Source: Rebecca billardiae RCC1528 (lineage: Eukaryota; Protista; Haptophyta). From it: DNA of 64,000 bases. The stretch is from NCBI GenBank assembly GCA_965240325.2, contig OZ251232.1:2046001-2110000 (forward strand), read 5' to 3'. Made by a program: the position numbers and the translations under genes. The notes under the pieces are model-generated. The model did no database searches, had not been told where the DNA came from, and was given only the letters and a program-made list of their open reading frames with translations. This document shows, piece by piece, positions 1-41,289 of this stretch (position 1 is its first letter; each line of letters starts with the position of its first letter).

Positions 1-365
1 GCGCCCTACTAATTCTATGATTTAAAGACACAGGCACGAGGGCGCAGCTCTCCTGATTCGTCTGTAGTGGTACTGGTCGAAGCTTGCAGCAGTTGCAGTG
101 GTGTGAGCGCGTTGATGTTGGTCCCCAATCCCCATGGCGGATGTCGTTGTTGTCGTCGTCCGGACGTCGTCAGGACCACCAGGAAGTGCATGGGTACGAA
201 ATCAAAGGCGAGTGAGCATGTTGGCGTCGGCCAGGCCGTCCCCTACTTGGTCAGCAGCTGGTGCGGATGATGTCGTCGCCTACTTGGTCAGTGGCAGGTC
301 GTGGTGGACGATGGTGTAGCCTGTTCTTGGTCAGCAGCTGGTGGATGATGTTGTGGCCGAAGTTA

Positions 366-1143
366 CAGGGGTCTCAACAATTAAACGTCACATTCTGACT
401 GAGCTGCACGCCACTGCTCACCCTGCCCCCCTGGGCTGACCCAGGCGGCCCCCACGGCCAGTGCACGACGGTTTCGACCCAGCGCGTCAGCCCCAGCGCG
501 CGTGGGCTGGAGTTGGGCACACCAGCAGGTCACACGGCTGCAGGCGTACAGCCTGTCGCAGCTGGCCAGATCCTGCCGCAGGCTTGTCGTCACTGGTCGC
601 GGGCCGTGTGCCCACACAGACCAGGCCTAAATTGTGCTTGGCAGTGGATCTGGTACCCCCTAGGGTGGGCTGCATGCCACCTGGGGGGGAGCTCATGGGA
701 TGCAGCTGCTGTGGCACAGTGCCCAATCCCGCACCCCCACCTGCGCAAGGACCTGTCGGGTCAGCTCCCCTGCACTGGGAGGCCAGCAGCAGCACCCGCT
801 GACACGCCCCGAGGGTGGCCAGCCACCCGACTTGAGGGGGCTGGAGTGGGGCTGGTGCAGCCAAGAGCTCTGCAGCCTAGCTGCTGGTGGCTGGCCTGCA
901 TGGATTTTCAAGCTGACCACCCACTGCTGCCTGCCGCACCCCTCGCTGCACCCACCTGGGCTGCTGCACATGCGAACTCTGGATGGCACCACAGCCCAGC
1001 ATGGAGAGCTGGCCAAGCAGCCACCCACTCGTCAGAATGGCCAGGGAGTGGGCTGTGCTAGACCACATCTAGCCAGGCAATCAAGTGCTCACATGCCTGT
1101 CCAGTGGCACAAACAGAGATACAGCTAATTGTTGAGACCCCTG
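366..1143. mobile_element. 778-bp MITE, left copy (Tc1/mariner/pogo-type CAG...CTG termini)
   Basis: Perfect 18-bp TIR CAGGGGTCTCAACAATTA (366-383) / TAATTGTTGAGACCCCTG (1126-1143). TA on the left, TG on the right. Confidence 0.9.
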
Positions 1144-4100
1144 TGCGGGGTCGGATGCACTTGCACATCATCACCCAGGCTCAGCAGGAGCCCAACAATG
1201 GCTCTTATGAGCAAGAGCAGCTGCGCATGTCACGCCAGACCTGTGAAAGATGCCACTAGGGACCAGCCCAGCTCGATCTGACCGGCAACCTCGCTGGTCT
1301 GGCACCGCTCATAGCGGCTGCACAGCCAGCCGTGGGCCACGGTCCGCACTGGCGCCCACTGGCCGCAGGGCAGACGTAGCATCTGGGCTCGGGCTAGGTG
1401 ATGAAACCGGGGCTGCCGTTCGGCCCAGGCGGTCCGTACGGGTCGCGTACGACACGCCAGGCCCGATCCTGCCCATCATCTAGCTGGTCTGGCACCGCTC
1501 ATAGCGGCTGCACAGCCAGCCGTGGGCCACCCGCACTGGCGCCCACTGGCCGCAGGGCAGACGTAGCATCTGGGCTCGGGCTAGGTGATGAAACCGGGGC
1601 TGCCGTTCGGCCTGGGCGGCCCGTACGGGTCGCGTACGACACGCCAGGCCCGGTCCTGCCCATCATCTAGCTGGTCTGGCACCGCTCATAGCGCTGCACA
1701 GCCAGCCGTGGGCCACCCCACTGGCTCCCACTGGCCGCAGGGCAGACGTAGCACCTGGGCTCGGGCTAGGCGATGGAAGAGGGGCTGCCGTTCGGCCTGG
1801 GCGGCCCGCACGGGTCGCGTACGACACGCCAGGCCTGCTTCTTGTGCCACGCCCTGCATTGCAGGGCAGTGAAGCCGAACTTGGTGCCAACATCTTAGGG
1901 GTGGACACCTGCATCTGCACGAGGTAGGTGATGATGGCCTTGGCCCCTCATATGGGGTGTACTGGCCAGGGCCAGCTGGTGCTTGTGAGCACCGTCACGG
2001 GCTGACCAAGGTGCCTCCTCTTCTTGCCACCTGGCTTGGCCACCATCAGGCACGTAATGAGCGTGGGCTTCACCATCGCGCGAGTTGCGCCCGCCAGTGG
2101 CCGCCCACCTTTCGGGGTTGCATGGTAGCGGCCGGCCAAACTGTTTGCGTTTGCCCGCGGGAATCCGGCGGGCCCGCAAAACGCCTTTCCGAGTCGAGCG
2201 AACGTTGATCACGCCCGGAAGCTGCTTCGGAAGGCCGACCCGACGCCTGTCGGAATCGAGACTTTGAGCTTGATTCGGGCGCGAGAGTCCAGCCGCCAGC
2301 AGCGAGCTGTCAAAGTCAGCCGCCGCATGGACCCCTGCGATGGCAGCCGCACTCGGGCGGCGTTGCCAGGCATGGCTGTACCAGCCCTGGCGGATGTTTC
2401 CGTGCTCAAATCAGCGCACTGCAGGGATGCATGGGCCCAACTTGGCATTGTACGACTGCCAGGCCCTGCCCCCTGCCTCCCCAGGGGCAGAATCACCCCT
2501 GCCGTAGCCCTCTCGCACCAACCGTGAGAGCAATCCTTGAACAAAACAAAGCAGTGTGCTGCAGAAGATCTAGGTCTTCTCGCACGAAAGCAGGCTTGCA
2601 TTCCGTCCTACCAACATGGTGGCGGATCACCCACAAAGCCATGGTGCCTATCCATGCCTGGCTTGTTCTACTGGCACTGTGCGGGGTCGGATGCACTTGC
2701 ACATCATCACCCAGGCTCAGCAGGAGCCCAACAATGGCTCTTATGAGCAAGAGCAGCTGCGCATGTCACGCCAGACCTGTGAAAGATGCCACTAGGGACC
2801 AGCCCAGCTCGATCTGACCGGCAACCTCGCTGGTCTGGCACCGCTCATAGCGGCTGCACAGCCAGCCGTGGGCCACCCGCACTGGCGCCCACTGGCCGCA
2901 GGGCAGACGTAGCATCTGGGCTCGGGCTAGGTGATGAAACCGGGGCTGCCGTTCGGCCCAGGCGGTCCGTACGGGTCGCGTACGACACGCCAGGCCCGAT
3001 CCTGCCCATCATCTAGCTGGTCTGGCACCGCTCATAGCGGCTGCACAGCCAGCCGTGGGCCACCCGCACTGGCGCCCACTGGCCGCAGGGCAGACGTAGC
3101 ATCTGGGCTCGGGCTAGGTGATGAAACCGGGGCTGCCGTTCGGCCTGGGCGGCCCGTACGGGTCGCGTACGACACGCCAGGCCCGGTCCTGCCCATCATC
3201 TAGCTGGTCTGGCACCGCTCATAGCGCTGCACAGCCAGCCGTGGGCCACCCCACTGGCTCCCACTGGCCGCAGGGCAGACGTAGCACCTGGGCTCGGGCT
3301 AGGCGATGGAAGAGGGGCTGCCGTTCGGCCTGGGCGGCCCGCACGGGTCGCGTACGACACGCCAGGCCTGCTTCTTGTGCCACGCCCTGCATTGCAGGGC
3401 AGTGAAGCCGAACTTGGTGCCAACATCTTAGGGGTGGACACCTGCATCTGCACGAGGTAGGTGATGATGGCCTTGGCCCCTCATATGGGGTGTACTGGCC
3501 AGGGCCAGCTGGTGCTTGTGAGCACCGTCACGGGCTGACCAAGGTGCCTCCTCTTCTTGCCACCTGGCTTGGCCACCATCAGGCACGTAATGAGCGTGGG
3601 CTTCACCATCGCGCGAGTTGCGCCCGCCAGTGGCCGCCCACCTTTCGGGGTTGCATGGTAGCGGCCGGCCAAACTGTTTGCGTTTGCCCGCGGGAATCCG
3701 GCGGGCCCGCAAAACGCCTTTCCGAGTCGAGCGAACGTTGATCACGCCCGGAAGCTGCTTCGGAAGGCCGACCCGACGCCTGTCGGAATCGAGACTTTGA
3801 GCTTGATTCGGGCGCGAGAGTCCAGCCGCCAGCAGCGAGCTGTCAAAGTCAGCCGCCGCATGGACCCCTGCGATGGCAGCCGCACTCGGGCGGCGTTGCC
3901 AGGCATGGCTGTACCAGCCCTGGCGGATGTTTCCGTGCTCAAATCAGCGCACTGCAGGGACGCATGGGCCCAACTTGGCATTGTACGACTACCAGGCCCT
4001 GCCCCCTGCCTCCCCAGGGGCAGAATCACCCCTGCCGTAGCCCTCTCGCACCAACCGTGAGAGCAATCCTTGAACAAAACAAAGCAGTGTGCTGCAGAAG

Positions 4101-7100
4101 ATCTAGGTCTTCTCGCACGAAAGCAGGCTTGCATTCCGTCCTACCAACATGGTGGCGGATCACCCACAAAGCCATGGTGCCTATCCATGCCTGGCTTGTT
4201 CTACTGGCACTGTGCGGGGTCGGATGCACTTGCACATCATCACCCAGGCTCAGCAGGAGCCCAACAATGGCTCTTATGAGCAAGAGCAGCTGCGCATGTC
4301 ACGCCAGACCTGTGAAAGATGCCACTAGGGACCAGCCCAGCTCGATCTGACCGGCAACCTCGCTGGTCTGGCACCGCTCATAGCGGCTGCACAGCCAGCC
4401 GTGGGCCACCCGCACTGGCGCCCACTGGCCGCAGGGCAGACGTAGCATCTGGGCTCGGGCTAGGTGATGAAACCGGGGCTGCCGTTCGGCCCAGGCGGTC
4501 CGTACGGGTCGCGTACGACACGCCAGGCCCGATCCTGCCCATCATCTAGCTGGTCTGGCACCGCTCATAGCGGCTGCACAGCCAGCCGTGGGCCACCCGC
4601 ACTGGCGCCCACTGGCCGCAGGGCAGACGTAGCATCTGGGCTCGGGCTAGGTGATGAAACCGGGGCTGCCGTTCGGCCTGGGCGGCCCGTACGGGTCGCG
4701 TACGACACGCCAGGCCCGGTCCTGCCCATCATCTAGCTGGTCTGGCACCGCTCATAGCGCTGCACAGCCAGCCGTGGGCCACCCCACTGGCTCCCACTGG
4801 CCGCAGGGCAGACGTAGCACCTGGGCTCGGGCTAGGCGATGGAAGAGGGGCTGCCGTTCGGCCTGGGCGGCCCGCACGGGTCGCGTACGACACGCCAGGC
4901 CTGCTTCTTGTGCCACGCCCTGCATTGCAGGGCAGTGAAGCCGAACTTGGTGCCAACATCTTAGGGGTGGACACCTGCATCTGCACGAGGTAGGTGATGA
5001 TGGCCTTGGCCCCTCATATGGGGTGTACTGGCCAGGGCCAGCTGGTGCTTGTGAGCACCGTCACGGGCTGACCAAGGTGCCTCCTCTTCTTGCCACCTGG
5101 CTTGGCCACCATCAGGCACGTAATGAGCGTGGGCTTCACCATCGCGCGAGTTGCGCCCGCCAGTGGCCGCCCACCTTTCGGGGTTGCATGGTAGCGGCCG
5201 GCCAAACTGTTTGCGTTTGCCCGCGGGAATCCGGCGGGCCCGCAAAACGCCTTTCCGAGTCGAGCGAACGTTGATCACGCCCGGAAGCTGCTTCGGAAGG
5301 CCGACCCGACGCCTGTCGGAATCGAGACTTTGAGCTTGATTCGGGCGCGAGAGTCCAGCCGCCAGCAGCGAGCTGTCAAAGTCAGCCGCCGCATGGACCC
5401 CTGCGATGGCAGCCGCACTCGGGCGGCGTTGCCAGGCATGGCTGTACCAGCCCTGGCGGATGTTTCCGTGCTCAAATCAGCGCACTGCAGGGACGCATGG
5501 GCCCAACTTGGCATTGTACGACTGCCAGGCCCTGCCCCCTGCCTCCCCAGGGGCATAATCACCCCTGCCGTAGCCCTCTCGCACCAACCGTGAGAGCAAT
5601 CCTTGAACAAAACAAAGCAGTGTGCTGCAGAAGATCTAGGTCTTCTCGCACGAAAGCAGGCTTGCATTCCGTCCTACCAACATGGTGGCGGATCACCCAC
5701 AAAGCCATGGTGCCTATCCATGCCTGGCTTGTTCTACTGGCACTGTGCGGGGTCGGATGCACTTGCACATCATCACCCAGGCTCAGCAGGAGCCCAACAA
5801 TGGCTCTTATGAGCAAGAGCAGCTGCGCATGTCACGCCAGACCTGTGAAAGATGCCACTAGGGACCAGCCCAGCTCGATCTGACCGGCAACCTCGCTGGT
5901 CTGGCACCGCTCATAGCGGCTGCACAGCCAGCCGTGGGCCACGGTCCGCACTGGCGCCCACTGGCCGCAGGGCAGACGTAGCATCTGGGCTCGGGCTAGG
6001 TGATGAAACCGGGGCTGCCGTTCGGCCCAGGCGGTCCGTACGGGTCGCGTACGACACGCCAGGCCCGATCCTGCCCATCATCTAGCTGGTCTGGCACCGC
6101 TCATAGCGGCTGCACAGCCAGCCGTGGGCCACCCGCACTGGCGCCCACTGGCCGCAGGGCAGACGTAGCATCTGGGCTCGGGCTAGGTGATGAAACCGGG
6201 GCTGCCGTTCGGCCTGGGCGGCCCGTACGGGTCGCGTACGACACGCCAGGCCCGGTCCTGCCCATCATCTAGCTGGTCTGGCACCGCTCATAGCGCTGCA
6301 CAGCCAGCCGTGGGCCACCCCACTGGCTCCCACTGGCCGCAGGGCAGACGTAGCACCTGGGCTCGGGCTAGGCGATGGAAGAGGGGCTGCCGTTCGGCCT
6401 GGGCGGCCCGCACGGGTCGCGTACGACACGCCAGGCCTGCTTCTTGTGCCACGCCCTGCATTGCAGGGCAGTGAAGCCGAACTTGGTGCCAACATCTTAG
6501 GGGTGGACACCTGCATCTGCACGAGGTAGGTGATGATGGCCTTGGCCCCTCATATGGGGTGTACTGGCCAGGGCCAGCTGGTGCTTGTGAGCACCGTCAC
6601 GGGCTGACCAAGGTGCCTCCTCTTCTTGCCACCTGGCTTGGCCACCATCAGGCACGTAATGAGCGTGGGCTTCACCATCGCGCGAGTTGCGCCCGCCAGT
6701 GGCCGCCCACCTTTCGGGGTTGCATGGTAGCGGCCGGCCAAACTGTTTGCGTTTGCCCGCGGGAATCCGGCGGGCCCGCAAAACGCCTTTCCGAGTCGAG
6801 CGAACGTTGATCACGCCCGGAAGCTGCTTCGGAAGGCCGACCCGACGCCTGTCGGAATCGAGACTTTGAGCTTGATTCGGGCGCGAGAGTCCAGCCGCCA
6901 GCAGCGAGCTGTCAAAGTCAGCCGCCGCATGGACCCCTGCGATGGCAGCCGCACTCGGGCGGCGTTGCCAGGCATGGCTGTACCAGCCCTGGCGGATGTT
7001 TCCGTGCTCAAATCAGCGCACTGCAGGGATGCATGGGCCCAACTTGGCATTGTACGACTGCCAGGCCCTGCCCCCTGCCTCCCCAGGGGCAGAATCACCC

Positions 7101-10100
7101 CTGCCGTAGCCCTCTCGCACCAACCGTGAGAGCAATCCTTGAACAAAACAAAGCAGTGTGCTGCAGAAGATCTAGGTCTTCTCGCACGAAAGCAGGCTTG
7201 CATTCCGTCCTACCAACATGGTGGCGGATCACCCACAAAGCCATGGTGCCTATCCATGCCTGGCTTGTTCTACTGGCACTGTGCGGGGTCGGATGCACTT
7301 GCACATCATCACCCAGGCTCAGCAGGAGCCCAACAATGGCTCTTATGAGCAAGAGCAGCTGCGCATGTCACGCCAGACCTGTGAAAGATGCCACTAGGGA
7401 CCAGCCCAGCTCGATCTGACCGGCAACCTCGCTGGTCTGGCACCGCTCATAGCGGCTGCACAGCCAGCCGTGGGCCACCCGCACTGGCGCCCACTGGCCG
7501 CAGGGCAGACGTAGCATCTGGGCTCGGGCTAGGTGATGAAACCGGGGCTGCCGTTCGGCCCAGGCGGTCCGTACGGGTCGCGTACGACACGCCAGGCCCG
7601 ATCCTGCCCATCATCTAGCTGGTCTGGCACCGCTCATAGCGGCTGCACAGCCAGCCGTGGGCCACCCGCACTGGCGCCCACTGGCCGCAGGGCAGACGTA
7701 GCATCTGGGCTCGGGCTAGGTGATGAAACCGGGGCTGCCGTTCGGCCTGGGCGGCCCGTACGGGTCGCGTACGACACGCCAGGCCCGGTCCTGCCCATCA
7801 TCTAGCTGGTCTGGCACCGCTCATAGCGCTGCACAGCCAGCCGTGGGCCACCCCACTGGCTCCCACTGGCCGCAGGGCAGACGTAGCACCTGGGCTCGGG
7901 CTAGGCGATGGAAGAGGGGCTGCCGTTCGGCCTGGGCGGCCCGCACGGGTCGCGTACGACACGCCAGGCCTGCTTCTTGTGCCACGCCCTGCATTGCAGG
8001 GCAGTGAAGCCGAACTTGGTGCCAACATCTTAGGGGTGGACACCTGCATCTGCACGAGGTAGGTGATGATGGCCTTGGCCCCTCATATGGGGTGTACTGG
8101 CCAGGGCCAGCTGGTGCTTGTGAGCACCGTCACGGGCTGACCAAGGTGCCTCCTCTTCTTGCCACCTGGCTTGGCCACCATCAGGCACGTAATGAGCGTG
8201 GGCTTCACCATCGCGCGAGTTGCGCCCGCCAGTGGCCGCCCACCTTTCGGGGTTGCATGGTAGCGGCCGGCCAAACTGTTTGCGTTTGCCCGCGGGAATC
8301 CGGCGGGCCCGCAAAACGCCTTTCCGAGTCGAGCGAACGTTGATCACGCCCGGAAGCTGCTTCGGAAGGCCGACCCGACGCCTGTCGGAATCGAGACTTT
8401 GAGCTTGATTCGGGCGCGAGAGTCCAGCCGCCAGCAGCGAGCTGTCAAAGTCAGCCGCCGCATGGACCCCTGCGATGGCAGCCGCACTCGGGCGGCGTTG
8501 CCAGGCATGGCTGTACCAGCCCTGGCGGATGTTTCCGTGCTCAAATCAGCGCACTGCAGGGACGCATGGGCCCAACTTGGCATTGTACGACTACCAGGCC
8601 CTGCCCCCTGCCTCCCCAGGGGCAGAATCACCCCTGCCGTAGCCCTCTCGCACCAACCGTGAGAGCAATCCTTGAACAAAACAAAGCAGTGTGCTGCAGA
8701 AGATCTAGGTCTTCTCGCACGAAGCAGGCTTGCATTCCGTCCTACCAACATGGTGGCGGATCACCCACAAAGCCATGGTGCCTATCCATGCCTGGCTTGT
8801 TCTACTGGCACTGTGCGGGGTCGGATGCACTTGCACATCATCACCCAGGCTCAGCAGGAGCCCAACAATGGCTCTTATGAGCAAGAGCAGCTGCGCATGT
8901 CACGCCAGACCTGTGAAAGATGCCACTAGGGACCAGCCCAGCTCGATCTGACCGGCAACCTCGCTGGTCTGGCACCGCTCATAGCGGCTGCACAGCCAGC
9001 CGTGGGCCACCCGCACTGGCGCCCACTGGCCGCAGGGCAGACGTAGCATCTGGGCTCGGGCTAGGTGATGAAACCGGGGCTGCCGTTCGGCCCAGGCGGT
9101 CCGTACGGGTCGCGTACGACACGCCAGGCCCGATCCTGCCCATCATCTAGCTGGTCTGGCACCGCTCATAGCGGCTGCACAGCCAGCCGTGGGCCACCCG
9201 CACTGGCGCCCACTGGCCGCAGGGCAGACGTAGCATCTGGGCTCGGGCTAGGTGATGAAACCGGGGCTGCCGTTCGGCCTGGGCGGCCCGTACGGGTCGC
9301 GTACGACACGCCAGGCCCGGTCCTGCCCATCATCTAGCTGGTCTGGCACCGCTCATAGCGCTGCACAGCCAGCCGTGGGCCACCCCACTGGCTCCCACTG
9401 GCCGCAGGGCAGACGTAGCACCTGGGCTCGGGCTAGGCGATGGAAGAGGGGCTGCCGTTCGGCCTGGGCGGCCCGCACGGGTCGCGTACGACACGCCAGG
9501 CCTGCTTCTTGTGCCACGCCCTGCATTGCAGGGCAGTGAAGCCGAACTTGGTGCCAACATCTTAGGGGTGGACACCTGCATCTGCACGAGGTAGGTGATG
9601 ATGGCCTTGGCCCCTCATATGGGGTGTACTGGCCAGGGCCAGCTGGTGCTTGTGAGCACCGTCACGGGCTGACCAAGGTGCCTCCTCTTCTTGCCACCTG
9701 GCTTGGCCACCATCAGGCACGTAATGAGCGTGGGCTTCACCATCGCGCGAGTTGCGCCCGCCAGTGGCCGCCCACCTTTCGGGGTTGCATGGTAGCGGCC
9801 GGCCAAACTGTTTGCGTTTGCCCGCGGGAATCCGGCGGGCCCGCAAAACGCCTTTCCGAGTCGAGCGAACGTTGATCACGCCCGGAAGCTGCTTCGGAAG
9901 GCCGACCCGACGCCTGTCGGAATCGAGACTTTGAGCTTGATTCGGGCGCGAGAGTCCAGCCGCCAGCAGCGAGCTGTCAAAGTCAGCCGCCGCATGGACC
10001 CCTGCGATGGCAGCCGCACTCGGGCGGCGTTGCCAGGCATGGCTGTACCAGCCCTGGCGGATGTTTCCGTGCTCAAATCAGCGCACTGCAGGGACGCATG

Positions 10101-11876
10101 GGCCCAACTTGGCATTGTACGACTGCCAGGCCCTGCCCCCTGCCTCCCCAGGGGCAGAATCACCCCTGCCGTAGCCCTCTCGCACCAACCGTGAGAGCAA
10201 TCCTTGAACAAAACAAAGCAGTGTGCTGCAGAAGATCTAGGTCTTCTCGCACGAAAGCAGGCTTGCATTCCGTCCTACCAACATGGTGGCGGATCACCCA
10301 CAAAGCCATGGTGCCTATCCATGCCTGGCTTGTTCTACTGGCACTGTGCGGGGTCGGATGCACTTGCACATCATCACCCAGGCTCAGCAGGAGCCCAACA
10401 ATGGCTCTTATGAGCAAGAGCAGCTGCGCATGTCACGCCAGACCTGTGAAAGATGCCACTAGGGACCAGCCCAGCTCGATCTGACCGGCAACCTCGCTGG
10501 TCTGGCACCGCTCATAGCGGCTGCACAGCCAGCCGTGGGCCACCCGCACTGGCGCCCACTGGCCGCAGGGCAGACGTAGCATCTGGGCTCGGGCTAGGTG
10601 ATGAAACCGGGGCTGCCGTTCGGCCCAGGCGGTCCGTACGGGTCGCGTACGACACGCCAGGCCCGATCCTGCCCATCATCTAGCTGGTCTGGCACCGCTC
10701 ATAGCGGCTGCACAGCCAGCCGTGGGCCACCCGCACTGGCGCCCACTGGCCGCAGGGCAGACGTAGCATCTGGGCTCGGGCTAGGTGATGAAACCGGGGC
10801 TGCCGTTCGGCCTGGGCGGCCCGTACGGGTCGCGTACGACACGCCAGGCCCGGTCCTGCCCATCATCTAGCTGGTCTGGCACCGCTCATAGCGCTGCACA
10901 GCCAGCCGTGGGCCACCCCACTGGCTCCCACTGGCCGCAGGGCAGACGTAGCACCTGGGCTCGGGCTAGGCGATGGAAGAGGGGCTGCCGTTCGGCCTGG
11001 GCGGCCCGCACGGGTCGCGTACGACACGCCAGGCCTGCTTCTTGTGCCACGCCCTGCATTGCAGGGCAGTGAAGCCGAACTTGGTGCCAACATCTTAGGG
11101 GTGGACACCTGCATCTGCATGAGGTAGGTGATGATGGCCTTGGCCCCTCATATGGGGTGTACTGGCCAGGGCCAGCTGGTGCTTGTGAGCACCGTCACGG
11201 GCTGACCAAGGTGCCTCCTCTTCTTGCCACCTGGCTTGGCCACCATCAGGCACGTAATGAGCGTGGGCTTCACCATCGCGCGAGTTGCGCCCGCCAGTGG
11301 CCGCCCACCTTTCGGGGTTGCATGGTAGCGGCCGGCCAAACTGTTTGCGTTTGCCCGCGGGAATCCGGCGGGCCCGCAAAACGCCTTTCCGAGTCGAGCG
11401 AACGTTGATCACGCCCGGAAGCTGCTTCGGAAGGCCGACCCGACGCCTGTCGGAATCGAGACTTTGAGCTTGATTCGGGCGCGAGAGTCCAGCCGCCAGC
11501 AGCGAGCTGTCAAAGTCAGCCGCCGCATGGACCCCTGCGATGGCAGCCGCACTCGGGCGGCGTTGCCAGGCATGGCTGTACCAGCCCTGGCGGATGTTTC
11601 CGTGCTCAAATCAGCGCACTGCAGGGACGCATGGGCCCAACTTGGCATTGTACGACTGCCAGGCCCTGCCCCCTGCCTCCCCAGGGGCAGAATCACCCCT
11701 GCCGTAGCCCTCTCGCACCAACCGTGAGAGCAATCCTTGAACAAAACAAAGCAGTGTGCTGCAGAAGATCTAGGTCTTCTCGCACGAAAGCAGGCTTGCA
11801 TTCCGTCCTACCAACATGGTGGCGGATCACCCACAAAGCCATGGTGCCTATCCATGCCTGGCTTGTTCTACTGGCA
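1144..11876. repeat. Tandem array of seven near-identical ~1530-bp units joined by CTG
   Basis: Units start at 1144, 2680, 4213, 5746, 7282, 8814 and 10347 (periods 1536, 1533, 1533, 1536, 1532, 1533). Each begins TGCGGGG and ends CTGGCA. Junction CTG at 2677, 4210, 5743, 7279, 8811 and 10344. Confidence 0.97.
1293..1835. repeat. Three ~187-bp sub-repeats inside each array unit (first unit shown)
   Basis: GCTGGTCTGGCACCGCTCATAG recurs at 1293, 1483 and 1670. The third copy is more diverged and truncated. Confidence 0.93.
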
Positions 11877-12654
11877 CAGGGGTCTCAACAATTAAACGTC
11901 ACATTCTGACTGAGCTGCACGCCACTGCTCACCCTGCCCCCCTGGGCTGACCCAGGCGGCCCCCACGGCCCGTGCACGACGGTTTTGACCCAGGGCGTCA
12001 GCCCCAGCGCGCGTGGGCTGGAGTTGGGCACACCAGCAGGTCACACGGCTGCAGGCGTACAGCCTGTCGCAGCTGGCCAGATCCTGCCGCAGGCTTGTCG
12101 TCACTGGTCGCGGGCCGTGTGCCCACACAGACCAGGCCTAAATTGTGCTTGGCAGTGGATCTGGTACCCCCTAGGGTGGGCTGCATGCCACCTGGGGGGG
12201 AGCTCATGGGATGCAGCTGCTGTGGCACAGTGCCCAATCCCGCACCCCCACCTGCGCAAGGACCTGTCGGGTCAGCTCCCCTGCACTGGGAGGCCAGCAG
12301 CAGCACCCGCTGACACGCCCCGAGGGTGGCCAGCCACCCGACTTGAGGGGGCTGGAGTGGGGCTGGTGCAGCCAAGAGCTCTGCAGCCTAGCTGCTGGTG
12401 GCTGGCCTGCATGGATTTTCAAGCTGACCACCCACTGCTGCCTGCCGCACCCCTCGCTGCACCCACCTGGGCTGCTGCACATGCGCACTCTGGATGGCAC
12501 CACAGCCCAGCATGGAGAGCTGGCCAAGCAGCCACCCACTCGTCAGAATGGCCAGGGAGTGGGCTGTGCTAGACCACATCTAGCCAGGCAATCAAGTGCT
12601 CACATGCCTGTCCAGTGGCACAAACAGAGATACAGCTAATTGTTGAGACCCCTG
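11877..12654. mobile_element. 778-bp MITE, right copy
   Basis: Same TIRs (11877-11894, 12637-12654). About four substitutions seen versus the left copy. CA on the left, TA on the right. Confidence 0.9.
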
Positions 12655-12665
12655 TAGTAGTAGTC

Positions 12666-14833
12666 GGGCCGGGGGTTTGGTGGTAAGGATTTTCCGAAAA
12701 ATCGGCGGCCGCTTTTTCCGAAAATCGCGGGACTGTGGCGGACGCGATCCATGCCGCACGACGGTGATGGCCGCGCCGGGGGAGGACGCGGGACCGCCGG
12801 ACCGGAGGTGCAAGCAGGCCGCAGCTGCGATTGTTGCGTTGATGGGACGGGCGGCGCGGCGGCCAATGCGCCGGCCCATGATCCGGGCGATACCCGGACG
12901 TCGAGACCGGGGCACAAGTTCCCGAGCGGGTGCCGTAGGAGAATCAGCACCTGCTCACACGTAGCAAGCATTGCCCTTGGTCTTGTTCGCGCGGGGATCA
13001 ATCTGGCCCACAGCTTCGCGATGCTGCGCACTGTGGGCCAGGTGATGCAGGCTTTCCAGTTCGCCGAACTCAAGAGGACTGCTCGCACTGCCAAGGCTTG
13101 GGCCTGTACCGCGGTGGTGCTCGGCGGACCTGATCCAAAGCCACAGCTGTGGTTTGACCTCGCGGGCGTACATGGCAAGACTGTATGGTCGCAAGGCCAT
13201 CGATGTGAACGTGTGCACGGCACCACTCTGCCATGCTTCAACTCGTCTGGGTCGAGCTGAGGGCAATCATTCGTGCCCGGAGCATCTGTCAGGCGCGCGT
13301 GCATGCATGCGCGCTGCGCGCCGCGCTGCGGCCCGCGGCTACAGCTCCTGTCACCTTAGCAGATATCTAATGCTGACCACCCCTTTGCGCATCCTGCAGT
13401 AGGCTGTGACAGGTGGGCCTTTCGCGACTGCGCCCATCGTCATCATGTCGCCGTGATCATCTGTCAGCAGCTGATCGTCGAGTCGTCTGCAGCTGGTCAG
13501 ACTCTCCGCCCGTTCGCCGGGCCCGGCCTCAGGCTCAGGCTGCTCTCGATCGGGCTGGCGCCCAGCTCAAGTGCTAATCTTCGGCTCACACGTAGTCACA
13601 TATCCGGCGGCGGATGGCAGCGGTGGGAGAAACAAGTCTCACGCGCAGGCTCAGCTGATGGCCGCCGAGGCCAGCAGTGCGTCAAAATCGTCAGTATAGT
13701 AGTACGCGTAGCATCATCGTCAACGGTCAGCGACTATGTACTCATAGTCATACTGCATCCCGTCGACTCGTCCTCAGCCGCCGGTTGCGCCTAGGAGCGG
13801 GCGCAGCGTCGCCCTGGCGACCTCAACTGCAGGCCAATCGCGTCGGGCGGCAGCGGGGGCAGCATGATGAACGCCAAGTCGACGAGTGCGAGATTTGCCG
13901 CTGGCGCCTCGCCCGCCGCTCGCCGCGCAGCACTCTCAGGGATGACTGCCGGCAGCGCGCGCAGCTCTGAGCTCACCGGCGATCAGCGCGCGCAGCTCAT
14001 GCGCGCGCGCTGACCGGTGAGCGTGCCCGCGCCCATCGCGCGGACGAGCGCGGCGTAGGCCGAGAGCAGTGCGGCTCTCCGCACGTGCGTGTGCTCCGCC
14101 AAGCCCCGCGCGAGCTCGAGCTACACGCCGTGCGCAAGCCGAGCTCAACCGCATCGCACGCTTGAGATCACTACGCGACAGAACGCAGAGGTCGGTGAGG
14201 CTTTCAGAGCGGCGCTCACTGAGGCGGCTTGCGCAGGGCGTAGCTCGGCGAAGCGCTACTGGAGATGAATACCTGTCCCCGAGACGCAAGCCACGACATG
14301 TCTGTCAACTGGGACAGCACACTGAGGGAAGCATCAGCTGCGAGGTCAGGGTGTCTACTGCCAGACATCTGCCAGTAGAACGCCTCGCGCCCCACCTTCG
14401 TGCCAGCTGGGCCGAGCAGGTAGCAGCAAGAGTTCGCGCAGTACGGTATGGCAGCGTCCACGAACGGCGAGAGGGTCGCCCAACCGCCATGTACTTGGAT
14501 CGACAGCTCGGCGCACGCGCTGAACGATTGGAAATGCACTTCTGCGTGAACGGCAGCTTGCGCGCCTGCTTGCCCGCGGCAGGAGCCAGCACGACGGCGG
14601 CGCACGAAACAAGGAACGTCAGCACGCTCATGGCGAATGTTTGCCGTCCTCCGCCTCGCCGCTCGCATCCGAATCGCGGCCGATTCGGCGACGTGCAGAT
14701 GGGCGGCATGGCGCAGCCAGCTCCCAAGTACCTGTAAGGTATTCGCACATAGGAGCCGGCTTCATAGGCGACTCGCCTTTGAATAGCAGCTGCCTTCATA
14801 GGCGCGCGCTCAAAATAGCGCACGCTGACGAAG
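12666..14833. mobile_element. Partial non-autonomous TIR element, copy A (one terminus at 12666)
   Basis: Starts CGGGCCGGGGGTTTGGTGGTA, followed by two TTTTCCGAAAATCG repeats. 13543-14833 is an inverted, diverged copy of 26194-27502, whose outer end carries the same terminal motif. Confidence 0.55.
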
Positions 14834-33304: not shown

Positions 33305-36300
33305 TCAGGTCTCCGTCGTCCCGCCGCGCTCGGCGGCGTACGCGATGAGGTACCTCATCTCCTCCTGGCACGCGCACGCGGTGCGCTGCGGGGCCGAGGA
33401 CGAGCCTGTCGCGGGGCGGGCGGCGCGGCGCGGGCGCAGCGTGAGCGAGCGGCGCGCGCGCCGCCGCGCAGCGCGGCGCGGCGCGCGCACCGCTTGCTGC
33501 AGCGAGCGCGACGTGCGCTGCCATGTAGTCGCACTGCGTGAGCGGCCCGCCCTGCGGGATGTACTTCGCGAGCACGAGCCGCTCCTCGAACGTCCAAGCG
33601 TACGAGTTGCCGCGCTTCGTGCCGTCGCCGCCGCCGCCGCCGGCGCGCTGGCCCGGCGCGAGCGGCCGTGCCAGCTTGAGATCCTCGCCTATCATGTGCT
33701 TGTAATCCAGGTGCGCCGCGAGCTCCGTCGCGTGCGGAGGCCCGGCTTTCGTCTTGGTGCCGCTGCCGGGGACCCTGTACTGCGCGCGATACACGTCGCC
33801 CGCCTCCAGCCGCTGGACGGTCACGCCCTTCAGGGTGCACTGCTTCGGCAGCCGCTTCTTCGGCGGCGGCTCGGGCGCGGAGGCGATGAGGGCGCGCTCC
33901 TCCTGTGTCGGGCGGTACAGGACCGAGAGGGGCACGATCTGCTCCTCGCGGTTCTTCGCGCGCACCATGGCGTCGAAGGCGTCCTCCGCCGCCTGCCGCG
34001 TGACCCTCTCCTTCTTGTGCGATTTTCCGGGCACATTGAGCCTCGCGTAGAAGACCGTCTTCCCCCTCGTGTTGGTCTTCGCGTCGGTCGCGCAGCCATA
34101 ATTGTTGTTGCGCGGCGGCTCGCCGCCGCCCGCGCCGCCGCCGCCGCCCGCACCGCCGCCGCCGCCCGCGCCGCCGCCGCCGCCCGCGCCGCCGCCGCCG
34201 CCCGCGCCGCCGCCGCCGCCCGCGCCCAGCCCCATCTCAGCGAGCTCGCTGTCGAGGGGCTGGTTCACCGCGCGCATCGCCGCGTCGCGCACGGCGCCGG
34301 CGAGCTCGCGCACGCGCTCCGCGGTCGCGGTCGAGAGCTCGCGCTGCAGCGCGCCGACGGGGCCCGCCACGTCGCCGCACTCGAGCGCGAGCCGCAGGTT
34401 GGACGCGATGCGGTCGAGCTCGTGCACGCCGTGCGCGCGGCACGCCTCGATCAGGTTGTCCACGCGCCCCGCGCGCGCCTCGTTCGTCTCCCGCACCGCC
34501 ACCTCGCCCACGCCGACCGCCGCCTCGAGCGCCGCCTCGAGCGCGCGCGCCGCCGCCGCCACCGCCTCCGCCTCCGCCGCGCCGCCGCCGCCGCCGCGCG
34601 CCGCCACCTCGATCGCCACGGCGAGCGCGATGGCGGCGGCGCGCACGGCGCGACTCCCGCCCCACTGCGCGAAGAGCGACTCGCGCGGGCTCGGCAGGAC
34701 CACGCCGTGCAGGCCGCGCACGTGCGCCGCGTGCCACAGCAGCGCGCGCAGCTCGCACCGGCGCCCGACCGCCATGTCGCCGCGCGCGCTGCCGAGCGCG
34801 CCGTCCGCCGCCTCCGGCTCCGGCTCCGCCGCCTCCGCCGCCTCCGCCGCCTCCTCCTCCGGCGACGGCACCGCCTCCGCCTCCTCCTCCGCCTCCTCCA
34901 CCGACGGCACCGCCGCCCCCGCCGCCCCCGCCGCCGCCCCCGCCGCGCGCGCCGCCGCCGCCGCCGCCGCGCGCGCCGCGCGCACGAGCCGCGTGAGCCC
35001 GCGCAGCGCCGCGTCGAGCGCGTGCGCGGCAAAGCCGTCGCGCGCGAGCCGCGCGGCGGCCGCCGCGTACGCGGCCGCGCTCGCGAGCTCGACGCACTGC
35101 GGGCCGTGCACGGCCGAGGCGAGCGAGGCGCGCTGGTTCCACAGCTGCTCGCGCGCGGCGCGCGGCACCGCGCCCGGGCCGAGCACCGCCTCCAGCGCGT
35201 CGGCCACCGCCTCGACGTTGATGGTCGGGAGCGCGTCGCTCGGCGGCGGCGCGTTGCCCATGGGGCGGAGCACGCCGCGCGCGGCCAGGCGCGCGTGGAG
35301 GGCGGCGAGGCGCTGGAACACGGTGGACTCGGCGTCAGACGCGAGCACCGCGTCGAGCAGCGCGTCCACGTCCTCCTCCTCGCCCTCCGGCAGCGCCGCG
35401 CCCGCGCCGCGCAGCGCGGCGGCGAGGCTCGGGTACGCCTGCGTGGGCGTGAGCACGCCCAGCAGCTCGTCGCGCTGCTCGGCGCACGCGGTGCGCAGGA
35501 GGTGCGCGGCGCGCGCCCAGAGGGCCGCGTCGTCGTCACCGCCGCCCTCGGCGTACGGCGCGAGGCACGCCATGCGCGCGAGCAGCGACGCCGCGCGCAG
35601 CCGCGCGATCACCTCCGACGGCGGCACGGCCACGAAGCCCGCACCGTCGTGCGCGGCGTGCGCGGCGCGCGTGAGCCGCTCCGTCGCCGCGCGGCCGAGC
35701 GGCGTGACGATAAACTCGCGGTGCACGGGGCCGTGCTTGTCGAGGTCATCGCTCGTCAGGCCGCGCAATGGCAGCGCGAGCTCGATGGCCTTGGGGTCGG
35801 CGAGCAACTCCGTCCGGACGCCGCTCGCCGTCTCGAGCACGCAGAAGCCCTGGAGCAAGCCCGGCGCCGCGCCCGCGTCGGCGCCGTCGGCGCCGCCGAG
35901 CAGGACGAGCACCGGCGCGCGCGCGACGCCGGGGCGGCTGCGGAGGTCGTCGAGGAGGTCGTGGATCCACGCGTACTGCTGCACGCACGCGAGGCACCAC
36001 GCCTCCTCGACGCCGACGGTCTCCGCGCCGAGCAGCCGGCAGAGCGGCACGACGCCGAGCGCGCGCGCCGGGAACCACAGCCGCAGCGCCTTGGCGATCA
36101 GCCCGAGGTGGAAGAACTGCTGGTGCACGCACTGCAGGTTGGCGAGCGCGCGCAGCAGCGCGCGGCCCTGCTCGTTCAGGTCGAGCGCCTCGAACGCCGC
36201 GCGCCCACCCACGCCGCCGCACGCGGCGCCGCGCTCGTCCACCGCGAGCAGCAGCAGCAGTTGGAAGAAGAGCGTTCGGCGCAGCTGCGCGTTCGGGCCG

Positions 36301-38816
36301 TCGCCCTGCACGACCGAGACGTCCGGGTCGCCCTCGAGCGTCTGCATCAGCACGGCCGCCGCCGGCGCGTGGTGGTTGGAGCCCTCGACCACCTCGGACG
36401 TGCGGATCGCGAGCTTGATGCCGAGCGTGCGCAGCAGATTGTTGATCTGCTCGACGCTCAGGCCGCCGCTCGCGCCGCCGAGCGTGCTCGCAAACTCGAG
36501 CACGTGCGCGCCGCCGGTGCGGTGCGCCTTCTCGAGCAGCTTGAACAGCTTGGAGTTCTTGTGCTGAACGAACTCGGGCGGGACATCGCCCGCGCGCATG
36601 TGGCGGACAAAGAGCGCGCGCGCCGCGTCGCTCTCCGCGAGGAAGAGGCGCAGCATCGCGGCCGTGCACGCGTCCTCCGCGTCCTCGAGGTTTGGCTCGA
36701 ACGTCACGTCCGCAAGCTCGGCCGCGTCCGCGCCCTCGGCGAGCAAGCCCGTCACCGACTCGACGCACCACGCGCCGACGTTCGCCACGCGAAGCACGTC
36801 GCCCACGCGCAGCGCGTACGCCATGCGCGGCTTCATCGGCCACCCGTTCAGCTTCGCGCCGCCCGACTTCGGCCCCTTGTTCCGGCCGAGGAAGACGGCC
36901 GCGGCGCCGATGATCCTGAGGTACCGCGGCCCGCCGGTCGGGGGAGCGTCACCGCGCGCGGACTCGATCCGAACGTGCGTGCCGTGCGTCGCGCGGACGA
37001 GCGCGTCGCCCGAGCGGAGCGCGGGCGAGCCCGAACCCGCTTCGGGCGCGAGCTGCGTCTCGCCGCCCATCGCCGCCGACGCGAGGGCGGCGCGCAGCTT
37101 GGGCTCGAACCGCGCCGGCGCGCCGTCCGCGCACGCCGCGCCGCCGCCGCTGCCGCCTGCGGCGGGTGCGCCCGGCGGCGGCGGCGGCGCGGAGCCGGGG
37201 CCCATCTCGGCGCTCGCGCCGACGTCGTCTGCAGGCGGCTGCGCCGCGCCGCCGGCACCACCCGCGCCGCCGACGCCGCCGGGCGGCGCATCCGCGCGCT
37301 CGGGCGCATGCGCGCGCGCGCCGCGCACCTCCGCGCCCGCCGGCTGCTTGCCTCGCGCCGGCGCGTCGGCGCCGGCGCCGGCGTGCGCGCTCGCGGCGGC
37401 GGCGTCGGCGCGCGGCGGCGTCGGCTCGGGCTCAAAGTCCGAGTCCGACGCCGCCGGCCCGCCGCCGGAGGTCGAGGCCGGGCCGGCGCCGTCCGCCACC
37501 GACTCGACGGTCCACTCGAGGGCGTTGTTCACCGTGAGCCCCGCCACGCGCAGCACGTCGCCCTTGTGCAGCGCGTACGCCGTGTGCGCCTTGAGACGGT
37601 AACCGTTCAGCGAGACCACCGTCGAGATGCGCGAGGCCGGGTTGAGGTCGGTCACCGCGCCGCCCTTGATCTCGACGTGCTGCCGGCCGAGGTTGTTGTT
37701 GTGGACGCGCACGCGCCCGCCCGCGGGCGACTCGCCTTGGACCGCGCGGCCGAGCACGTCGCCCGATCGGAGCGCGGGGGCACCACCAGAGCGGCCCTTG
37801 AGCAGCGCGTGGCCGCCCTTGCCGCTCGGCGCCGCGGCCGCGGCGGCGCGCGCGGCGAGGAAATCGGACTCGCCGTCCGCCTCGCGCGGCTCGGCGCCGG
37901 TGATGGCGTCTGAGCCGGCGGCGAGCGCCGGCGCCGCTGCGTCGTCGGCGCGCGTATGCGCATGCGCGCGCGCGCCGAGCGCCTTCGCGCCCGCCGGCTG
38001 CTTGCCTCGCGCCGGCGCGTCGGCGCCGGCGCCGGCGTGCGCGCTCGCGGCGGCGGCGTCGGCGCGCGGCGGCGTCGGCTCGGGCTCAAAGTCCGAGTCC
38101 GCCGCCGCCGGCCCGCCGCCGGAGGTCGAGGCCGGGCCGCCGCCGTCGGCGGACGCGGGCGCGCTCGCCGCGCCGCTGTCGGCCGCGCGGGCCGGCGGCG
38201 GCTGCTTCGCCGCCTCGGCGTCGGCGTCGGCGCCGGAGGCCGCGGCCGCGCGGGTACCGTCGCCACCCGAGACGTCGCGCGGCGGCGCGGGGGCGAAGTA
38301 CCGGTGGATGCCGATGGGCTCGCCGCCGCGGCCGCCGCCGCGGCCGCGGCCGCCGCTGCCGTGCCCGTCGCCTTGCGCGCTCGCCGCGCGCGGCGGCGCG
38401 GCGGCGGACTGCGCGTCCTCCACGTGCGCGCGCGCGCCCGCCGCGCCGCCGCGCGCCGCCGCGCCGTCGGCCGGCGCGGCCGGCGCGGCCGGCGCGGCCG
38501 GCGCGGCCGGCGCGGCCGGCGGTGCCGCGCCCTTGGGTGCTTGCTCGACCTTGGCCTCGTCCTTCGGCTCGCCGTCGGGCACGACGGCGTTCGACGCCAC
38601 GAGCGGCCGCGCCCGCTTCGGGGCTGGCTCGCCGCCGCCGACTCGCTCGGCGCGCGCGGCCGCGCCGTCGCGCGGCTGCCCGCGCCCATCGACCGACGCC
38701 GCACGGGCCGCGGCGCCGAGGCTGGACGCAGCCAGCGCGTCGGGGCCCTCGTCGTCCACGTCCATGCCGTCCGTCAGGCGCTCGCGCGCCGCCGCATCGC
38801 CCGTCATCGCGCTCAT
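33305..38816 (-). CDS. Large (~1808 aa) multidomain protein: two FHA-like, central helical region, two AP2-like, C-terminal Myb/SANT-like
   Basis: 5.7-kb open frame with host codon bias. FHA-like LNGYRLKAHTAYALHKGDVLRVAG and LNGWPMKPRMAYALRVGDVLRVAN. AP2-like FYARLNVPGKSHKKERVTRQAAEDAFD and KGVT...YRAQYRVPG...HATELAAHLDY. Removing GT-AG intron 33406-33490 joins AWTFEERLVL to PQRTACACQEEMRYL. Start uncertain. Confidence 0.75.
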
Positions 38817-39396
38817 CGTGCTCGTTGCGTGCCCTTGGGTTGCTTCGCGCGCTTCGCCGCTGTGGATGAAGTCCAACGACCTTCCTCCGCGCCAAAGCGC
38901 ACGCAAGCGCGCGAACGAGCGGAGAGCGAGTCCGGCGTCCGATCCGGGCGGAGCGCCCGGACCGCGTCAGCGGAGCCGCCGGAGCGCCCGGACCGCGTCA
39001 GCCGGACTCGCCCCAGCCGCTGGGCGCGCGCGCCTCGCCCGCGCGCGCGGCCGCGCGCGGCGCCCGCGCGCGCTGCGCGGCAGCGCGCGGGCGGCAGCGG
39101 CCGCGGCGCGGCTGCGCGGCGAGCGAGAAGCGACGGCCGCGCGCGCGGGCCGGCGGCAGCGCCAGCGCCGCCGCCGCGTCCCGCTGCCAGCGGCGCGGCC
39201 GCGCGGCGGGCGGGCGGCCGCGCGCCGCTGCGCCGCCGCGCCGGCTACGCGGCAGCCGCCGCGCCACGCGCGCCGACGAGCGCGCAGCCGCACCCCGGCA
39301 CCAGTCAGCCCACGCGCGCCGCATTCCGTCCGCCACAGCCCACCGCCCGCCCGCCGCCGCCGCCACCGCCGCCACCGCCGCCACCTGCGTCGCCGC

Positions 39397-39440
<44 letters not shown>

Positions 39441-41289
39441 GCCGCCGTCCGCCGCGCCGCCCGCCGTCCGCCGCACCGCCGCCGCAGTCTGTGCGGCGAC
39501 GGCGCTGCACGACGCGGCAGATCGGCGGGCGCGCCACCACCTCGCCGCCCGCCGCCACGGGCGCGCCAGCCGCCTCGGGCCCGCGGCGCGCGCCGCGGCG
39601 GCGGCGGCGGCGGCGGCGCGGCGCGCGCCGCACGCCGCGCGCCGGTTGCGCGGGCGCGGCGCGCGGCGCAGCCCGGCCGCCGCGCGCGGGCAGGCGGGCG
39701 CCCGCGCGCGAGGCGCGCGCGGGCGGAAGCGCGCGTACGCCGAGGGCCCCGCCCGTCGGTGTGCGCGCGTGTGCGCGCACGCGCGCGCGCCGCGTGCCGG
39801 CGCTCGTCAGGCGCGCGCGCGTCTGCCGCGGCTCGGCCGCGGCAGACGCGCGCGCGCGCGGCCGCGGCGGCGCCGATGGGCTCGCCGCGCGGGGGGCGCG
39901 CCGGCGTCAGCGCGCGCCGCTGGCGGCAGCTGCACGCCGCGTGCGCGCCACGCCGCCACGCCTGCGCCGCGCCGCACGCCGCTGCGGCGCGCGCCGCGGC
40001 CGGCGGCAGCGGCGCGCGCCGCGGGCGGCGCGCGCGCCGCGCCGCGCGCGCCGGCGCGCCCAGAGGCGGCGCGCCGCGCCTCGCCGCGCGAGCGGTTCGG
40101 TCAAACCGCCACTGCGCCGCGCGGCGGCGCCCCGCCGCGCCGTCGGCGCGGTCGGGCGCGAGCGCCGCGCGCGAGCGGCGGCGCGCAAAGGCGCCGCCGC
40201 GCCGAGCGCGCGCGCGCGCGCCTCAGCGGGGCGGCGGCCGGAGCGCGCGCGTCGGCGGCGGCGGCAGGCGGACCTCTGCAGCGCCCTCACGCGGCCGCCC
40301 GGCCACCACCCCCCACCGTGCGCGCACGCGCGGGCCCCCGTCGTCCGAGCGCAGCGCCGCCCATGGCGGATGCCGCGTGCTGCAGCGGACTGCACAGCTG
40401 CAGACCTGCCCGAGCTCGCGGCAGCTCGGCGCGCCCCGAGCTGCACGGCGCAGCGGCGCCGCGGCGCGCGTGATTGGACCGTTTGCCACCCGGCGCGAAA
40501 CGACGAAATCCGGTGGCACTCGCGCGCGCCACCGTTCAAAATCTCCGGCGCGGCGGGCAGTCCGGTCGCCGCTCGCGCCATCAGCCATGGAGGTGGTCCC
40601 CCGCCCGCGCGCTTGCTCCGCGCCGTCGTGTGCGCCGCTCGGTACCGAAGCGCGGCCGCTCCATGTGTCCAGGGCCAACGCCTGGACAGCTGAGAGTGGC
40701 ACCTTCAGCGTGCACGCCGCTACCGCCGATGCGCCGACAGCGGCAAACGTCCCGCGCCTCAGCGCCGTGCGCGACGGCCGCGGCGGGGTGAGTGGCGGCC
40801 GGGGCGGGCGGCGTGGAGTGTGTGGGTTGAGCAGCGGCGGGGCCACTGTTGAGTTGGCCCTCGGCGAGGCGGGGTGATATGCTGGGCGCAGTGCCAGAGC
40901 CCGGTGGTTGTGCAGTGGTGAGCCTCGGGGCCAGCTCCTCTCGACAGTGCCGAGCGCTGCTGAGGTGCCCCGTCTTGACCTCCCCCGCAGCCCGAGCCGC
41001 TCGGCGGCAGTCAGTTCGGGAGCAGCTGCGTCGGGCACGGCATGCTTGCTGGCTCCAGCGAGCGTACAGCCAACCCCGCTGCTCTAGGGAGCGGGTGGTC
41101 GGGGGGCCCGCGTACCCTGTCCCCGCGTGCGCAGGGCTCTCGCCGGCCGCCGACCCCTATTTATTGTCTCCGCCTCAGGCTGCTCGGCTAGTTGGGGCTC
41201 GGACGCGCGTCGCGGCACAGCGCCGCGCGGCCGCGAGCGCGGCGCGCGCATCGGCCGCCTGCCTGAGGCTCGGCCCGGCGGGCGCGGCG

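Follow-up and report, generated by a model that had tools for sequence, protein, structure and literature searches.

A seven-unit tandem array inside a composite Tc1/mariner-type insertion and the probable excision footprint at its joints

The 64,000-nucleotide stretch of DNA analysed here (the window) carries, within its first 12.7 kb, a TA-to-TA block of ~12.3 kb (364–12656) in which two 778-bp modules in the same orientation enclose seven 1.53-kb units (U). We propose, with a probability of about 0.6, that the block is a composite Tc1/mariner-type insertion in which a founding break at the module ends was followed by unequal exchange. The block itself is a single TA-flanked insertion of a non-autonomous, composite-like transposon whose direct modules enclose the non-coding U. 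Since founding joints decay, the founding of long-unit tandem repeats can seldom be observed; this array is young, its joint is intact and single-copy sisters lie in the same genome, and the first step can therefore be read directly. The block is made up as follows.

364–365, no strand: left TA target-site duplication of the whole 12.3-kb unit
366–1143, plus strand: left 778-bp end module, a MITE-like long terminal direct repeat without a Pfam domain; 18-bp inverted repeats at 366–383 and 1126–1143
1144–2676, plus strand: U1, 1533 bp; with U4 it shares a derived GGT insertion and a derived T at position 1285
2677–2679, plus strand: joint 1, CTG (inside 2671–2690)
2680–4209, plus strand: U2, 1530 bp; position 1315 carries a derived A, as in U5
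2829–3368, plus strand: 187-bp internal sub-repeat, 2.9 copies, found in every U
4210–4212, plus strand: joint 2, CTG
4213–5742, plus strand: U3, 1530 bp; T at position 1347, private to this unit
5743–5745, plus strand: joint 3, CTG
5746–7278, plus strand: U4, 1533 bp; variants identical to those of U1
7279–7281, plus strand: joint 4, CTG
7282–8810, plus strand: U5, 1529 bp; the U2 variants and a private 1-bp deletion
8811–8813, plus strand: joint 5, CTG
8814–10343, plus strand: U6, 1530 bp
10344–10346, plus strand: joint 6, CTG
10347–11876, plus strand: U7, 1530 bp; sole unit with the ancestral T at position 777
11877–12654, plus strand: right 778-bp end module; inverted repeats at 11877–11894 and 12637–12654
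12655–12656, no strand: right TA target-site duplication

The array proper (1144–11876) consists of seven head-to-tail U copies of 1529–1533 bp each, and the left and right modules differ at 4 positions between 366–1143 and 11877–12654. U starts with TGCGGGG and ends with CTGGCA, neighbouring units being separated by three extra bases, CTG, so that all six internal joints read CTGGCA-CTG-TGCGGGG. The array edges carry no extra bases: on the left, module sequence ending in GAGACCCCTG meets TGCGGGG between 1143 and 1144 (CCCCTG/TGCGGGG), and on the right, CTGGCA meets CAGGGGTCTC between 11876 and 11877 (CTGGCA/CAGGGG). These are exactly the readings of edges and joints given in an earlier note on this DNA. 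The 187-bp sub-repeat within U varies in copy number among composites at other genome loci.

The module belongs to a dispersed family in the genome searched, which is the window's own assembly (72 Mb, 41 contigs, one strain). At least 40, and about 45, copies are present genome-wide, about 30 of them solo. The module termini read CAG...CTG, with a perfect 18-bp terminal inverted repeat in both window copies, and this inverted repeat has 89 ends in the 72-Mb genome against 0 for a reversed control. Among the module copies matched to both ends, 25 of 26 have TA at each outer end that does not adjoin U, and a second pattern search returned 66 exact TA-plus-inverted-repeat ends genome-wide. The module ends lacking TA number 18 genome-wide; all have a CA/TG flank, and most share descent. 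A Pfam search of the four longest frames of the module gave no match. On the strength of its TA flanks, inverted repeat, CAG...CTG termini and lack of a Pfam match, we assign the module to the Tc1/mariner kind, as a non-autonomous, TA-targeting element with CAG...CTG ends. The earlier note had called the flanking MITE mariner-type, and the TA targeting, the ends and the 18-bp inverted repeats bear this out.

Genome searches with Pfam DDE_1, DDE_3 and mariner models found no cognate transposase carrying the module's inverted repeats. Their only two hits, a DDE_3 open frame (C31:420119-420556) and a DDE_1 frame (C26:648473-648823), are doubtful as autonomous partners, both being unlinked at the level of exact and one-mismatch inverted repeats: such a repeat is absent from C31, and its copies on C26 lie far from the DDE_1 frame. 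An inverted-repeat search allowing three mismatches gave 171 places, of which 100 were listed; a 3176-bp element on C16 (C16:2225203-2228378) is bounded by the module's inverted repeats.

The arrangement seen in the window recurs elsewhere with a single interior unit. The earlier note had proposed a search for single-unit composites, and six were found at different TA sites (C3:351463, C10:783754, C15:1155089, C12:539103, C8:2109987 and C11:1712011). At each locus a module lies on both sides of U, the outer flanks all differ and the inner joints are identical; with the window included, TA lies outside in 7 of 7 composites, and module-U-module measures 3089–3489 bp. Its presence at six further TA sites with different flanks means that module-U-module is a mobile unit, an inherited architecture rather than a chance pair of MITEs. 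The composite family has moved recently, as the near-identical pairs C3/C10 and C8/C11 attest. Composites with a single U represent the older condition and the common one, and include a diverged subfamily B as well as a degenerate U copy on C5 that retains only the left module and an unchanged left inner joint. The family has the layout termed LTDR-INT-LTDR, with long direct terminal repeats carrying their own inverted repeats, TA duplications, solo repeats and an n=7 form.

Comparison of left and right modules revealed a close concordance. All 17 of 17 lineage-specific module substitutions are shared by the two modules of a composite, left and right, and the only departures from left-right identity are confined to single copies (4 in the window, 1 in C10, 3 events in C8). 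Lineage variants of the composites are also carried by solo modules. To judge from these substitutions, the concordance suggests that the two modules often undergo exchange or conversion with one another, or that a single-module intermediate exists. An LTR retrotransposon, TRIM or LARD was considered and rejected: the module has CAG...CTG ends, 18-bp inverted repeats and a 2-bp TA duplication, there is neither a primer-binding site nor a polypurine tract, the interior starts with TGCGGGG and not TGG..., and the interior end is pyrimidine-rich on both strands, leaving the identity of left and right modules as the only LTR-like feature.

The interior unit does not travel by itself. Exact matches to the first 26 bases of U number 14 genome-wide, and those to its last 25 bases 13; outside the window, 7 of 7 U starts and 6 of 6 U ends touch a module. 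Because every start and every end adjoins a module or a CTG joint, U is non-mobile on its own. This bears on an alternative raised in the earlier note, that U is a TG...CA element in its own right that inserts at CWG, and on the related idea that a U array is ancestral and acquired its modules later. U does start with TG and end with CA, and the joint is quasi-palindromic, but the flanks are CTG and CAG with no direct duplication, and the 14 of 14 starts and 13 of 13 ends next to a module or joint speak against independent insertion. Nor does later arrival of the modules fit, as module insertion is confined to TA, which the joint lacks, and the single-U composites, including subfamily B and the C5 copy, are common and older. 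We regard either version as highly improbable.

No coding content was recognised in U. Pfam searches of its ten longest frames gave no match, and neither did an Rfam search of window positions 1–13500. The possibility that U is a transposase-gene remnant was dropped for want of a Pfam match, an 'HGGGS'-like stretch seen by eye being without support. A metagenome scan for the U ends yielded one chance 20-mer match on an unrelated contig.

The joint itself is confined to this array. The window contains the joint 16-mer, CTGGCACTGTGCGGGG, at six positions and no more (2671, 4204, 5737, 7273, 8805 and 10338), compared with 0.28 occurrences expected there with up to 2 mismatches, and an exact search of the 72-Mb genome allowing CAG or CTG found it nowhere else. 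The alternative CAG junction that the earlier note had suggested seeking is accordingly absent from the assembly. Four near-matches with one mismatch lie on C8, C12, C22 and in a 56-bp satellite on C27; they have nothing else in common with U or the module and were rejected as an ancestral contiguous joint. The genome likewise contains no ordinary locus without modules at which GGCACTGTGCG is contiguous, the finding that the earlier note had named as contrary to its reading.

At all joints both U ends are complete, and the CTG between them corresponds to the last 3 nt of the module. This is the canonical footprint geometry of Tc1/mariner elements, but with CA/TG as flanks. The canonical scars of Sleeping Beauty, TACAGTA and TACTGTA, hold the terminal 3 bp of the element between the flanks, and more generally end joining after Tc1/mariner cutting leaves the terminal 2–4 nt of the element. 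How far such cutting tolerates changed flanks differs among the elements studied. Sleeping Beauty leaves no footprint once both flanking TAs are removed, at least one TA being needed; altering the base that adjoins the element makes Hsmar1 stall once the first nick has been made; for mariner the T beside the 3' end is critical, any base being accepted at the position that follows; and in Tc3 flank changes have a moderate effect only. In the composite described here, the inner module ends on the transferred strand both read module/T-G, keeping the T that adjoins the 3' end. The flanking base that counts in the relatives studied most closely is therefore present, and we rejected an equation of the inner flank with the 5'-TG change that stalls Hsmar1, since here the other base of TA is altered and the critical T is kept. 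Cleavage at the CA/TG inner flanks is thus disfavoured by the Sleeping Beauty test with both TAs deleted and allowed by the mariner rule. The earlier note had taken CTG for the expected excision footprint; the Sleeping Beauty geometry and the retained mariner T agree with this, while the CA/TG flanks, where Sleeping Beauty needs at least one TA, do not. Weighing these points, we consider that the CTG joint is probably an excision footprint.

Genome-wide traces of cutting at 3 nt, as opposed to 2 nt, were also sought. TACWGTA occurs 5341 times in the genome against 2995 for the reversed sequence, a 1.8-fold excess over a single crude control, and 110 kb of local sequence shows no enrichment of TA-CWG-TA (6 against 4 expected). 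We rejected the excess as evidence for 3-nt cutting because it is too weak.

The joint could also have arisen by a tandem duplication that owed nothing to a transposase. Through a template switch or end joining at a single shared C, the U end, extended by one base into the right module, would have been joined 3 nt before the U start inside the left module, and the match to a footprint would be coincidental. The joint can indeed be parsed with a 1-nt microhomology (C), as ...GGCA-C-TGTGCGG, only a single independent event would have to be explained, and the genome searches found no cognate transposase. Such an origin must, however, place both breakpoints 0–3 nt from the module ends, in the exact Tc1/mariner geometry that had been predicted beforehand; by a rough estimate, two random breakpoints would match this geometry about 1 time in 200, even if both were restricted to ±10 bp of the boundaries. 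The recent mobility of the composite family (C3/C10, C8/C11) also argues against it. Because both breakpoints match the geometry predicted beforehand, we rate a template switch below a footprint and think it unlikely.

If the joint is a footprint, U would have been duplicated once at this locus by a break 3 nt inside the module ends, the site at which Tc1/mariner transposases cut the non-transferred strand, and end joining of the 3-nt overhangs would have given CA-CTG-TG. We infer a transposase as the maker of this break, and two routes to it may be envisaged. First, unequal exchange between modules could have produced module-U-module-U-module, from which the middle module was then excised. 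Second, cuts at both inner module ends, made on sister chromatids, could have been followed by joining of the U ends. Exchange between modules is plausible in view of the 17 of 17 lineage substitutions found in both modules of a composite. Excision of a middle MITE was one of the routes offered in the earlier note, and it has a precedent in KolobokP (PMC9587614); as for the precursor, no module-U-module-U-module, no other U-MITE-U arrangement and no (LTDR-INT)n-LTDR multimer of the module/U family was found in the assembly.

The growth of the array can be followed from variants among its units, which we polarised against the six other composites. At position 777 the ancestral T is found in U7 alone, and the derived C is common to U1–U6. 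Sharing has a period of three, with U1 equal to U4 (GGT insertion, T1285) and U2 to U5 (A1315), and one or more private changes mark each of U3, U5 and U7. Derived variants shared in this way indicate that the units were made by successive duplications, and the six joints therefore represent one founding event and not six independent observations. The statement in the earlier note that every junction reads CA-CTG-TG thus holds insofar as the six joints are alike, but what it describes is one founding joint that was copied. Judged by these variants, the array grew in at least three steps, probably by unequal exchange. In the simplest history, one duplication would have given two units, the left unit would have become three, the three-unit block would have been duplicated and the private mutations would have followed; the passage from two units to seven by unequal exchange would thus take at least two further steps, one of them the duplication of the three-unit block. 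The units differ by ~0.1%, with at most 3 differences per 1.5-kb unit, and the modules by 0.5%, which makes the array more recent than the point at which its two modules last matched exactly.

The same variants bear on a different origin, also put forward in the earlier note, in which U was excised between the inner module ends, closed into a 1.53-kb circle containing CA-CTG-TG, amplified by rolling circle and recombined into a resident U. The joint and the flanking modules are as this origin predicts, and inter-transposon circles form part of the model for maize Ac reversed-ends transposition (PMC3744419). The nested and periodic variants, with U7 ancestral, U1–U6 derived and a three-unit block, call instead for several duplications, which makes amplification in one burst unlikely; more steps are also required, and neither a free copy nor a further integrated copy of the joint occurs in the genome. 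The circle is for these reasons a very unlikely source of the array. That the assembler collapsed or expanded the repeat is a concern for any array of near-identical 1.5-kb units, which are hard to assemble. Here the units carry distinct and phylogenetically coherent variants, unique flanks lie on both sides and the assembly, with 72 Mb in 41 contigs, is of high contiguity, and we see hardly any chance of an artefact.

Returning to the footprint, we tentatively raise the further and rather doubtful idea that inner-end cutting at TG flanks is a regular side reaction that repeatedly seeds arrays of kb-long units in this Tc1/mariner lineage. If so, head-to-tail interiors would form via sister chromatids or after multimer formation, macrosatellite birth would be transposase-initiated and recurrent, and the identity of the modules within each copy would be explained. 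The scar reading by itself, if true, would mean that cut-and-paste transposases found tandem duplications in Tc1/mariner elements too; transposase-founded duplications have so far been documented genetically for maize hAT elements and inferred for the animal KolobokP. The composite architecture with direct end repeats would in that case have had a second, independent origin, in a different superfamily and a different eukaryotic supergroup. With its short element and its specific predicted products, namely a CA-CWG-TG joint, 1.53-kb circles and 2.31-kb circles, the system lends itself to testing.

The composite and its joint can be compared with several known systems. In bacterial composite transposons of the Tn5/Tn10 type and in IS26 translocatable units, two small elements bracket a cargo and mobilise it through their outer ends, as two small element copies do here. 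The bacterial arrangement is opportunistic, whereas the layout here is inherited and homogenised, its modules sharing lineage changes. The footprint TAC(A/T)GTA of Sleeping Beauty and other Tc1/mariner elements resembles the joint in that the terminal 3 bp of an element with CAG...CTG ends and a TA target lie between intact flanks; it differs in that those flanks are TA/TA and ours CA/TG, and in that no enzyme was found in the genome searches here.

Maize provides two further comparisons, the White Cap locus, where a Tam3L macrotransposon holds 1–23 tandem copies of a 28-kb cargo (bioRxiv 10.1101/082677), and Ac/fAc elements, whose reversed-ends transposition yields tandem direct duplications (PMC3744419). 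In both, as here, a cargo is moved as a single unit by two transposon copies lying close together, and, as we propose for the module-U array, an interaction of transposon ends founds a tandem duplication that grows by unequal crossing over. The maize elements are hAT transposons with 8-bp duplications, and transposon or composite transposon sequence stands between their repeats, in contrast to the bare 3-nt scar that joins a non-coding cargo in the module-U array.

The nearest counterpart is KolobokP of animals, in which LTDR-(INT)n-LTDR forms have been ascribed to excision of an internal LTDR from a multimer (Kojima and Bao 2022, PMC9587614), so that a path leading from transposon to tandem repeat by way of excision is known already in an unrelated transposon family of animals. 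The differences are several. KolobokP makes 3–5 bp duplications and belongs to another superfamily, whereas the family here has TA and CAG...CTG Tc1/mariner ends; its interior encodes a Kolobok transposase and a His-Me nuclease, whereas U is non-coding with no Pfam domain; its INT-INT joints lose 3–4 bp, whereas here 3 nt of the module are added at the joint; its hosts are animals, and ours is a GC-rich, alga-like eukaryote; and no (LTDR-INT)n-LTDR multimer was found in the assembly for the family here. Membership of the KolobokP lineage was rejected on the TA duplication and the interior without a Pfam domain, and the likeness is architectural only. It extends to long terminal direct repeats with their own short inverted repeats, an interior, solo repeats, duplications round the whole unit and LTDR-(INT)n-LTDR forms in both.

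The composites, whose U parts (the 1.53-kb non-coding interiors) were compared at L031-L036, fall into two subfamilies: A, comprising the C3, C10, C15b, C12 and window composites, and B, comprising those on C8 and C11. Divergence between A and B is very uneven along the length of the element. It amounts to ~6.5% in the unique part of U, but to only ~1.7% in the flanking 778-bp modules and 0.7% in the first 146 bp of U.

Module ends also occur outside the composites. Among the matches listed, three further ends (C11:1310296, C27:633378 and C35:442220) have the CA flank that characterises inner joints, and U searches of the genome did not find U beside them; these ends may belong to other types of cargo using the same module. 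A 3176-bp element at C16:2225203-2228378 bears the same 18-bp inverted repeats at both ends with TA outside, and contains no U and no DDE_1 or DDE_3 match in our genome searches. Related inverted-repeat families, in which TACAG is followed by the core ...CTCAACAAT or CCCAACAAT (TACAGTGCTCTCAACAAT and TACAGGGTCCCCAACAAT are examples), are present in many copies among the genome-wide matches listed. The module is part of a larger group of TA-flanked elements.

At L022 2256-3767 (genome C29:58811-65849), a second insertion breaks up a module copy close to the module's right end; its minus-strand frame of at least 433 aa looks like a transposase-associated protein of a different element. At C27:573790-574253 (L051), the units of a tandem repeat with a 56-bp period contain CTGGCACAGTACGGGG, one mismatch from the joint between U units; beyond this look-alike, comparison of L051 with U and the module revealed nothing else in common. 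Elsewhere in the window, tandem repeats at 41310-42775 with a period of ~203-211 bp (3 + 1.8 + 2.4 copies, 84-98% matches) sit within a very GC-rich stretch, and GC content reaches 77-86% at 34000-40000, where short GC-rich repeats are numerous.

Within each composite, the left and right modules (366-1143 and 11877-12654 in the window; L031-L036 elsewhere) have all 17 of 17 lineage-specific substitutions in common, and differ from one another only by private, tip-level changes. Conversion or multimer cycling may account for this concerted evolution, as may an intermediate with a single module. The modules evolve in concert, in the manner of LTRs, within an element of the cut-and-paste type.
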